From Vitrella brassicaformis CCMP3155 (Eukaryota > Protista > Chromerida), in NCBI GenBank assembly GCA_001179505.1, contig CDMY01000226.1, positions 1-64,000 of the forward strand: a DNA stretch of 64,000 bases, in the 5' to 3' direction. The number at the start of each line of letters is the position of its first letter. Position 1 is the stretch's first letter. The notes beneath the pieces are model-generated. The model ran no database searches and was not told the origin of the DNA. It saw only the letters and a program-made list of their open reading frames with translations. Below, one piece after another: positions 2,693 to 18,046 of the stretch. A program made the position numbers and the translations under genes.

Positions 2693-3203
2693 CGTTGTTG
2701 AGTGTCGCCTTTCGTCTGTCCCCTAGTAGTCCTAGGTTGGCTTCCCGCTACCCCTCCATTTCACCCGTGCTATGGTGTGTGGTGGGTCGGTGGCGGGGCG
2801 GCGGCCGCAGGACAGAGAGGACAGACCGAAGGAAGCTAGCAACACCCACACACACACCAGACAGACAGACAGACAGACAGACAGACCGGCCGTGTGTATC
2901 TGCTCGACATGAGACCCTCAGTCTGTCTGTCATCTCGTTGTTCCATTGGACACCTCCCGGCAGCTCTCTGGCCTGCCTTCTGTCTGTCATCACCTCCATG
3001 ACCTTGGTCTTTCGGTGCCGTGTGAGTGCTCTGTGGGACTGAGGTGGTGGCGGGGATGAGAAGCAAAGCGGGACAGAGAGCCGCAAAGGGCATGTATTGC
3101 TCAGAAATGAGAGCTACGTACATCGAATGTGGAGCCCGTGTTGATATGAGTGTCGGTGCCATTGACTGTATGACGTCAAGTCCATTGAACCGAGTCAGAT
3201 CTC
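2693..3203 (+). repeat. Dispersed ~0.5-kb repeat, copy 1
   Basis: Reverse-complement match to 17575-18046, with identical blocks such as TGGGTCGGTGGCGGGGCGGCGGCCGCAGGACAGAGAGGACAGACC and TCCATTGAACCGAGTCAGATCTC. Confidence 0.9.
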
Positions 3204-3404
3204 AGTAAGCACACATGCCAGCGTCCGACATGGACGATCACTCTTTCTCTCTTGCGCGAGGGCTCTTCTTTATCCCCAAGAGCGCAACCTTTTCTCTCTT
3301 GAGCACACACAAGAGAGAAAGAGTGGCGCCCTTGGGGACAGAGAAGAGTCCCATCTCGCGCCACGCCAGCCAATAGAGAGCACTAAGGATCTACACAGCA
3401 GGGG

Positions 3405-3751
3405 CTATGAGGATGTGGACGGCTCTGTCTTGATGATACCGACTGCCTTGAGGAGAGATGGAGCCAGACGCAGCGCCACCACATACGCTGCACACACAAA
3501 AACACAGTCAAGGCAAACACACACACACAGTGGTGAGTGTGAGGCAGTCCGTCATCGATATTCGATGTCTGGTGCATCTGACCTGCGAAGAACCGCAGCT
3601 TGAGGACGAGCTCTCGCTGCAGGACCGTCTCCTTCGGCTCTGACAGACGACGGACACGCAGTAAGACACCATAATGAGCATGAGATCCATCAGTTCTTAT
3701 GAAAGGGGTGCTTGTACCCTCACCATTGAACTCCTTCTTGAACGCAAACAT
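3405..3751 (-). CDS. TOM5: Tom5-like mitochondrial outer-membrane translocase subunit, 55 aa, 3 exons (3751-3724, 3639-3583, 3487-3405)
   Basis: Spliced product MFAFKKEFNEPKETVLQRELVLKLRFFAAYVVALRLAPSLLKAVGIIKTEPSTSS. Both GT-AG introns are phase 1 and keep frame. It aligns by eye with human TOMM5 ([26 protein letters not shown]) and yeast Tom5 (MF start, AAYV..L..P). Confidence 0.72.
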
Positions 3752-3824
3752 CGTCTTCCCTTAGTCTGTGCAGACTGGCGATCAGGGTTCGCGCCAGGGC
3801 GCGTGAAACTGATGCAGCAGAGCG

Positions 3825-6100: not shown

Positions 6101-9100
6101 CTACATTGCAGACGGCACTCGTGCTACTGGCGGCGGAGCGGTTGGCTCAGCGAATGTGGCGCCCATTAGCGTCGCTTTGGCCTTCAGAAGATAATCCCGC
6201 TCCTTCGCACGCGCCTGTGAATACGTGAGGCACATGACGACATCCCGAATGGGATCGTTCCTTGTGTGTGTCTCTGTACCTACCTGCTTTCTGGTGTCGT
6301 AGTTGCGCAGCAAGAAATCGCACGACTCGTGGAGCGAGGCCAGCTTGGAGTGAACGGCGTCAAAAGTCTCCCTCTCATCCCGTAGCTCTTTCTTTACTTC
6401 ATTCAGCTTCTGCAGGACAGAGGGAGGAAAGGGATACATGAGAGCGCTTAATCTTGCCGCTGGGGTCACCTGGTCCGCAGCTGCCTTGATGCCTTCCTGC
6501 TCGGTCATCTCCTTCATCCTCTTCTCCCACTGGTCTGTCCACTGAGCCATATCGGTCTGATAGGAGTCTACGTCGTTCTTTTCCTCTGTGTCGGCCACTG
6601 CCTGGGCCTTCCTGATGTCCGCTACCAGTATGTCGACGTGGTACAGGACATTTGTGGCGCCATCCTTCTTGCCACCGTACTCGCCTTCACTGAGGCAAGG
6701 ACCGACAGACAGACACATGAGCCATCCATGTGGGTGGCCTGTGTGTGCTCTCGACATACGGTGTCTCTGGGGGCGGCGGGACATCCACTGCTGGCGGCTG
6801 CTCTTTTTGTTGGATAAGAGATGTGAGTGGGCTGGATTCCTGCTGTCCATCAAAGGAGGAAGGAGGGCCTGCACACATCCGTGGAATAATATGCTCTTTC
6901 TCTCTCTCTTCTCATACCACATGTCACTTACCCGGCCTCTCTGCTCATTAGCGTCGCCCCTGCCGTCGATTTGCACCTCCGATGTCCACCCTCTCAGAAA
7001 TTGGTTCTTCGTCGGATGCTCCATTCGCAGCGGAGTCGACAAGAGAGCTTCCACCCTGGTACGGGCCTTGGTCGGTGATGTCAGCTGCAGAAACGAAATG
7101 CCCTCGAACACATGGCCCAGGTCGTTGGCCATACCCACTTGCTGCACACATGACCACCGAGACACATTGAGCGAAGATGCACACTGCCCTGCACCTGCTG
7201 CTGGAGCTTCTCTGCAGACAGGGATCGAGACAGAGTTCAAGAGGGCTGCAATAGAGTTTCCTCTGCCTGTACCTGCGGCGTAGTACTGTGCAATTCGATT
7301 TTTCGCCTTGCCAAGCAGCTCTTCAGCCTGCGTCCTTTCCAGGCCCTCATTCTGTCGACACGATAGACACACAGACAAACATGCAGTTTCATCTTCGCTC
7401 TCTGTCCTCATCGTACACATCACCTCATATTCCGCCTCTTCCGCAGCCCGGTTCTTCTGGGCCTCTTTCATGTCGCCATCGATCTGGACGATGGCGGCTT
7501 GTATTGACTGCATCTGAGCTGCCGCATCGGCCGCCTGCATCACACGCACACATACGGACGGACGAACAAGAGGGCAACCATTCATTTCTCATGCGGATGT
7601 ACCTCCTCTTTCACTGTCTCAACGTCGCTCAGCAGCTGTGAGATTGTCTGGCTCATCGTCACGTTCTCCTGTCGTGTGTTCGCAAGCTCTTCACTGCAGT
7701 AATCGCGATGCTGGTCATCCTTGTGCTGCTCATCGGCCATGGTATCCAGCACCCGATCGACCAGCCGCGCAACAGGCGCGAACTTGCTGCCGCCCTTAAC
7801 CCGTGGCTGTCCCTGTCTCTGGACCTGGCCAATGCCGGCACGCTGCATGAGTTGACTGAGGACGGCAGGGGGCAAGGAAGCGGCCAGCTGCATCAATTGG
7901 GCTTTGGTCAGCTGCTGTGGCTGCTGCGCGGGGAGGCCCACGGGGGGTGAGAGATGACGAGCAGCGGCCTTGTCGAGTTGGATGAGAGATGGGGCCGGCA
8001 CGGTCTTTTTGAAAAGGTCCAGCGCGTCGTCGTCATTAATTAGTTTGACGGTCTGCCGACGGCACCACACCACAGATATGCATGGATCACTTCTGCCCAT
8101 GCGTCTCACCTCACTGATGGCCTGAAACTCTTCGCTTCGTGACGCAGCACGAGCCTCGCGCTCCTGCATGTTCAGCTCGGCCATCATTACATTATGGCTG
8201 AGCAGGAAACATCATTGGCTCCTGCCGGTCGTCTCACTCACCTTAGCTTTGGTCTCGCAGCTGTTCACCAAGCCCTGGAGTGAGTGCTGATTGGCGGCAA
8301 GCCTCTCTTGTGCCTCCTGAGTGTGCCGTGTACACATACCATACGGTAAGTAAGGACATCGATGACAACGTCTTTTGTGAATGTGTGCTGACCTTCAGGT
8401 TGGTCTTTCGGTCCTGCTGCTTCATCTGTAGAGTTGCGTGGCGGTGGCTCTTCCGCTTGAGGGCCTGACAGGGGCAGAACACCCAGAAAGACACACCTGA
8501 CCGCATCATAAAGAGCGCCCGCGTGTATTAGCGAGCTGACCGCCTCTGCTGCCATTTTCTCCTCAGTCTTGGATTTGTGAAGCTCGTCGAACGCCTGGGC
8601 AGCTGCCTCCTCGCGCTTGTTCTCTGCAGCGACACATTATAACAGATAATACATTGACTGCCTTGCTCGGCGTGTCGGAGCAATCGCCAGCAAAGTGGTT
8701 GACCTTGTGCAAGGTCCTGCTCGAAGTTGTCCAGCATTTGCGCGAGCATGCCCAGGACCTCCAAAGACTGCGGGGAGTAGTCGCCGAAGGGGCTTTGCTG
8801 GCTGATCGCGCTGAGCACCTGCTGACTGCGGCTGCTGCCCGAGGCCTGACAAATGCCAATAGCACAGGGGGAAGATATGCATCACTTCATTCTCTCGGGC
8901 GTCAGGACCTGCAGCTGTGCCTTCAAGCTGAGGAGCTGCTGACTTCCCTGCCCATTGACAGAGGATGTTGGCCAGCACTCAGTGAGGTTTTGTCTCATAC
9001 CTGTCCCTGCTTGAGGATAGGAATGGCCTGTTTGAGGGCCGCAATGGATGACCTGAGGTCGGCGGCTTCGCTCTCGTAATCCTCCCTGTCGCGAGCCCTT

Positions 9101-17574: not shown

Positions 17575-18046
17575 GAGATCTGACTCGGTTCAATGGATTC
17601 GATGTAATACAACCAATTCGACGTAATATCAACACTGTTCTGAGCAATGCATGCCTTCGGGCTCTCTGTCCCGCTTTGCCTATGACCGCCGCCACCACCT
17701 CAGTCCCACAGTGCACTCACACGGCACAGAAAGACGGTGGTGATGGTGGTGTTCTGAGACAGAAGTCAGGCCAGTGAGCTGCCGGGAGGTGTCCAATGCA
17801 ACAACATGACAGACAGACTGAGGGTCGCATGTCGAGCAGATACACAGGGCCGGTCTGTCTGTCTGTCTGGTGTGGGTGTGGGTGTGGGTGTTGCTTGCTT
17901 CCTTTGGTCTGTCCTCTCTGTCCTGCGGCCGCCGCCCCGCCACCGACCCATCACACACGATGCCACGCGTGGGATGGAGGGGTGGCGTGACGAGTCCGAA
18001 GGACTGCGAGAGGGACAGACGAAAGGCAACCCGGACCACAGCAACG
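17575..18046 (-). repeat. Dispersed ~0.5-kb repeat, copy 2 (inverted relative to 2693-3203)
   Basis: Reverse complement aligns along the length of copy 1, with indels in the (GACA)n and (CACACC)n tracts. Confidence 0.9.

Follow-up and report, generated by a model that had tools for sequence, protein, structure and literature searches.

In known structures of the TOM complex, the small subunit Tom5 has a kink on the side of the intermembrane space, and its C-terminal segment is in contact with the N-terminal extension of Tom40, the two together forming the exit for presequence-less precursors (PMC9260164). Tom5 and Tom6 have been regarded as kept by opisthokonts and green plants (chloroplastids) alone (PMC10952624), and the apicomplexan TOM complex, including that of Toxoplasma, has been described as lacking Tom5 (PMC9490983, PMC13607561). 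Small Toms evolve fast and their orthologues are hard to detect, to the point that the time of origin of Tom5 and Tom6 is unclear for this reason (PMC5455965). A 2026 complexome study of Perkinsus proposed two proteins of less than 10 kDa as putative Tom5/6, namely Pmar_PMAR024099, which has homologues in Toxoplasma (TGME49_277920) and Plasmodium (PF3D7_1365200), and Pmar_PMAR017696 (PMC13623125). HHpred matches one of the myzozoan candidates of that study to yeast Tom5, and co-migration with TOM was seen for two, TGGT1_288245 being found to co-migrate with Tom40, while no small-Tom homologue was recovered from the Vitrella or Chromera proteomes, nor from other myzozoans (PMC13623125).

Here we analysed a window of 64,000 nucleotides (the whole stretch of DNA under study) on scaffold C226 from the genome of the free-living chromerid alga Vitrella brassicaformis CCMP3155, an alveolate, which comprises 72,700,666 bases in 1064 pieces (PMC4501334). 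On the minus strand of this window, three exons join into a protein of 55 amino acids that is a candidate Tom5 (Table 1); the gene is nuclear and present as a single copy in the genome, and both of its introns are of the GT-AG type on inspection of the sequence. The MF start of the protein, which human TOM5 also has, is fixed because an in-frame TAA lies four codons 5' of the ATG (3763-3761). Exon 1 translates to MFAFKKEFN, exon 2 contributes a middle part of 18 in-frame residues (3637-3584) and exon 3 a C-terminal part of 26 residues followed by the stop (3485-3405), and the concatenated exons are identical to a 55-amino acid database protein, hereafter P0001. If the same ATG is read without splicing, a 122-amino acid open reading frame results (3383-3751), in which exon 3 falls out of frame and the anchor is lost; this unspliced frame has no Pfam match and is absent from the protein collection. 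If intron 1 were the only one retained, the exon-2 part would be preceded by 28 additional in-frame residues.

The transcript itself was recovered through the stop-free frame around exon 3 (window positions 3408-3551, minus strand), which was used as the query of a word search and returned one database protein, P0001, with 100% identity throughout the exon-3 part. Two RNA contigs (L002 and L003) from JGI sample 3300017148 carry the P0001 frame unbroken at positions 28-195. By aligning these contigs to the window with blastn, we found three blocks, all at 100% identity: contig positions 1-55 correspond to 3778-3724, 55-112 to 3640-3583, and 109-747 to 3491-2853. The preliminary description of this locus had predicted three small exons spliced in frame to a 55-amino acid protein with junctions at 3723/3640 and 3582/3488, and this model is borne out by the exon translation and the identical RNA contigs, with both junctions crossed by the independent RNA assembly at 100%. 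The gene is thus confirmed as real, spliced and transcribed.

Table 1. Features of the small gene on the minus strand of the window (L002 is one of the two RNA contigs; positions are those of the window).
Feature	Position	Strand	Remarks
5' UTR	3752..3778	-	at least 27 nt; L002 1-27 matches at 100%
Exon 1, coding part	3724..3751	-	ATG at 3751; 28 nt = 9 codons + 1 base
Intron 1	3640..3723	-	84 nt, GT..AG; multiple of 3, without in-frame stop
Exon 2	3583..3639	-	57 nt; charged segment (predicted cytosolic) and start of membrane helix
Intron 2	3488..3582	-	95 nt, GT..AG; splits the Tom5-like motif, with F27/A28 on one side and Y30 on the other
Exon 3, coding part	3405..3487	-	YV..LR..P..LK half of helix and polar tail; ends with the stop TAG (3407-3405)
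3' UTR	2853..3404	-	at least about 550 nt; L002 196-747 matches at 100%

Beyond the locus, both RNA contigs are chimeras. Past a (GTCT)n tract, which lies at about 2859-2886 of the window, L002 (715-2174) and likewise L003 continue at 100% identity on scaffold C525 (31842-32937), a stretch in which a gene with a Prp3_C domain runs on the opposite strand. This junction is an assembly chimera; only the first ~745 nt of the contigs belong to the locus, and the gene is unaffected. Besides the (GTCT)n tract, the 3' UTR contains an imperfect palindrome and a dispersed repeat. The palindrome (3260-3351) is about 92 nt long, with 78% self-complementarity and many CTCT/AGAG runs, and could fold into a long hairpin within the mRNA. 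The repeat is short, occupying about 237 nt (2870-3106), and has an 88% identical inverted copy at 17638-17869. A bicistronic reading of the transcript was dropped, as the two downstream frames in the 3' UTR (108 and 112 amino acids) have neither a Pfam match nor a coding-type GC3. With respect to neighbouring genes, an open frame with a clear scavenger-receptor cysteine-rich (SRCR) domain (E = 1.9e-14; GC3 0.79) lies at 1798-2514 on the plus strand and is convergent with the small gene, heading for its 3' end, and a 494-amino acid open frame lies upstream at 6101-7585 on the minus strand, with a weak match to COG3_N (Golgi complex subunit 3) that falls below the cut-off (E = 0.0044), and is probably an exon of a neighbouring gene.

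The codon-position GC of the 55-amino acid frame is coding-like, with a GC3 of 0.75 and a GC2 of 0.36, versus out-of-frame GC3 values of 0.58 and 0.36 and an intron GC of 0.49. The frame is also the first open reading frame of the transcript and starts at its first AUG. P0001 is on record from the JGI/IMG RNA assembly only, without a copy in NCBI, UniRef or ENA and without any other member in its cluster, and phmmer over 1.84 billion protein representatives retrieved no further protein containing these exons. The gene therefore looks unannotated and missing from the reference proteome, for which the evidence is strong, if not absolute. Such a gap in the proteome fits the failure of the 2026 Perkinsus study to find a small-Tom homologue in the Vitrella proteome (PMC13623125).

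In its architecture, P0001 combines a charged N-terminal part (residues 1-19) with a moderately hydrophobic segment at about residues 20-47, which is broken by R25, R35 and K42 and contains Pro38, and a tail of eight polar residues after this segment. Translation and hydropathy thus reproduce the features first reported for the protein, that is, an MF start, a charged N-terminal half, a single moderately hydrophobic segment and a short polar tail. AlphaFold2, run without an alignment, predicts one helix at residues 11-43 with a pLDDT of up to 92 in mid-helix, and the predicted layout corresponds to a tail-anchored protein whose anchor is weakly hydrophobic. Size and layout agree with Tom5 (55 amino acids versus 46-51 for Tom5, one C-terminal anchor and a short tail), and Pro38 falls opposite the proline in the LR..P of human TOM5, the position of the Tom5 anchor proline, while the AlphaFold2 helix is continuous, without a kink.

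We compared P0001 with known families by three approaches. In Pfam, Tom5 (PF10642) was the sole family at E<=10 among 24,736, with 15.8 bits and E = 0.014, below the cut-off of 26.1; the match is collinear, placing residues 23-44 of the protein on positions 23-44 of the 46 in the profile. The exon-3 open frame alone also had Tom5 as its best Pfam match (E = 0.21), and exon 3 by itself (26 amino acids) had no match in Pfam or the PDB. In the PDB, human TOM5 (7ck6_I) was the sole match at E<=10 among 177,635 distinct sequences (E = 0.41), and residues 13-44 of P0001 align without gaps to residues 17-48 of human TOM5, with R.F..YV..LR..P..LK as the common residues. These common residues are more specific than a generic hydrophobic similarity. 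In the ESM Atlas, where 0.9 was taken as the lead level, the 30 nearest clusters include 9 of Tom5, which score 0.93 and 0.92 (210-213 of 256 features in common; recognition 3026). We hold with fairly good confidence that the Vitrella gene encodes a genuine Tom5-type small TOM subunit.

The likeness to Tom5 claimed in the preliminary description is accordingly upheld in rank, as Tom5 is the top match in Pfam, the PDB and the ESM Atlas, but not in significance, as every score lies below its formal threshold and the Pfam score equals the noise level of the genome. The main alternative is that P0001 is a small tail-anchored protein of another compartment or complex, such as the ER, the plastid envelope or another protein in the outer membrane of mitochondria, and that it resembles Tom5 by chance. 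The sub-threshold scores favour this reading, and the three similarity scores are not independent of each other, since all rest on the same helix of ~22 residues. Scanning all six frames of the whole genome with the Tom5 profile gave two noise matches of 15.8 and 14.6 bits (L004 and L005), which were rejected as low-complexity frames and not genes of this kind; because the six-frame noise reaches 15.8 bits, the Pfam score alone stands at the level of genome noise. The preliminary description chose the locus from raw DNA by its resemblance to Tom5, and a likeness selected in this way could be due to chance. Other small anchors (Emr1, Tom6 and DUF4516) also appear among the Atlas neighbours at 0.77-0.81; the next families after Tom5 are Emr1 and Tom6 at 0.80-0.81, with unnamed clusters at 0.80 or below.

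Relatives of P0001 that could show the motif to be conserved were sought in several collections. A word search with P0001 retrieved itself alone, as did the exhaustive phmmer search of the 1.84 billion representatives at E<=0.001, and 600 pattern matches in metagenome contigs yielded 0 confirmed relatives. Searching metagenome contigs with a degenerate DNA pattern for R.F..YV..LR..P..LK gave 24 matches, all of them unrelated and set aside: they represent a bacterial family of ~250 amino acids or frames with stops, none of them Tom5-like in architecture. A Foldseek comparison of the AlphaFold2 helix with the PDB returned nothing meaningful, the query being a single helix. None of these searches gave homologues from which a profile could be built.

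Against a chance likeness, the three methods each give Tom5 first and essentially alone, and the common residues are specific (Y, R, P and K), collinear and set in a protein of the right length. Moreover, since the open frame is a real spliced message in RNA and its motif is assembled across the junction of exons 2 and 3, the appropriate comparison set consists of the real small proteins of the cell and not of six-frame windows; when one real protein is considered, the Pfam E-value of 0.014 already includes the correction for all 24,736 families. We therefore consider a fortuitous resemblance unlikely.

A second alternative, which we regard as decidedly improbable, is that the protein is a small TOM subunit other than a Tom5 orthologue, for example a Tom6 counterpart or a small Tom specific to the lineage. 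Which members of the Tom5 and Tom6 families are orthologous is ambiguous between lineages (Fukasawa et al., PMC5455965), one of the Perkinsus candidates has itself been named 'Tom5/6' (PMC13623125), and Tom6 clusters are found near P0001 in the Atlas at 0.77-0.80. These clusters lie below the lead level of 0.9, and the best Tom5 value is 0.93 versus 0.80 for Tom6; the Pfam scan at E<=10 gave no match of P0001 to Tom6 (PF17112 / PF15184) or Tom7 (PF08038), and the motif match is to human TOM5. Finally, that the transcript is real and its 55-codon frame untranslated (a non-coding RNA or an incidental frame) is hardly credible, for although the protein is known here from RNA and genome sequence alone, has no conserved orthologue among the sequences searched and is followed by a 3' UTR about three times the length of the frame, the frame opens at the first AUG with an in-frame stop before it, its difference between GC3 and GC2 is typical of coding sequence here and is missing from the downstream frames, and both introns lie inside it, with splicing creating both the frame and the motif.

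If P0001 is a Tom5, it would be expected, by analogy with the yeast and human TOM structures (PMC9260164), to be tail-anchored in the mitochondrial outer membrane, its N-terminus facing the cytosol. Its helix would kink on the intermembrane-space side, presumably at Pro38, and its C-terminal segment may contact the N-terminal extension of Tom40, where it could aid both the assembly of Tom40 and the exit of presequence-less precursors. As for possible partners in the same genome, the transmembrane region of Tom22 was found on scaffold C466 (148416-148580, plus strand) with 33.9 bits, above the Pfam cut-off. Tom7 was not found in the six-frame genome scan, nor was Tom40 in a six-frame scan with Porin_3; these misses reflect the poor exon-by-exon detection of these proteins, not their absence.

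With respect to evolution, it had been suggested that an alveolate Tom5 would extend the distribution of the subunit. This would hold for chromerids, in which none had been found before, but not for alveolates in general, as putative Tom5/Tom6 proteins have already been proposed in Perkinsus, Toxoplasma and Plasmodium (PMC13623125). The novelty is therefore a Tom5 candidate in a lineage where it was missing, and not a new kind of system. The broader account, which we hold somewhat less firmly and still consider reasonably likely, is that Vitrella has a Tom5 with an animal-type R.F..YV..LR..P..LK anchor, that Tom5 predates the split of alveolates and opisthokonts (in LECA or close to it), and that this is the missing small Tom of chromerids, overlooked as a tiny gene with two introns that is absent from the proteome. 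If so, the gene would close the chromerid gap and speak for Tom5 being of ancient origin, and it would offer a bridge, that is, a less diverged query with which the true Tom5 of Toxoplasma and Plasmodium might be picked out among the current candidates. It would also imply that small intron-split genes are missing from the chromerid proteomes on which inferences of presence and absence are based.

Among the described small Toms, the 'Tom6' of plants is described as resembling yeast Tom5 (PMC5455965), and the Atlas neighbours of P0001 include a streptophyte Tom6 cluster at 0.80, with no Tom6 match in Pfam. The myzozoan putative Tom5/Tom6 proteins, compared by their description, are like P0001 all single-helix proteins of less than 10 kDa from the same supergroup, and phmmer with P0001 recovered none of these candidates at E<=0.001. 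Fungal Tom5 (PF10642) is similar to P0001 in length and in its tail-anchor architecture, and differs in that the N-terminal half lies outside the profile match. Human TOM5 (TOMM5; PDB 7ck6 chain I and 13 further entries) has 51 amino acids versus 55 in Vitrella; unlike in the human protein, the tail after the helix of P0001 is longer and rich in Ser and Thr, and the charged N-terminal part is not alignable, while each of the two proteins is a single long helix whose anchor includes a charged residue and a proline.
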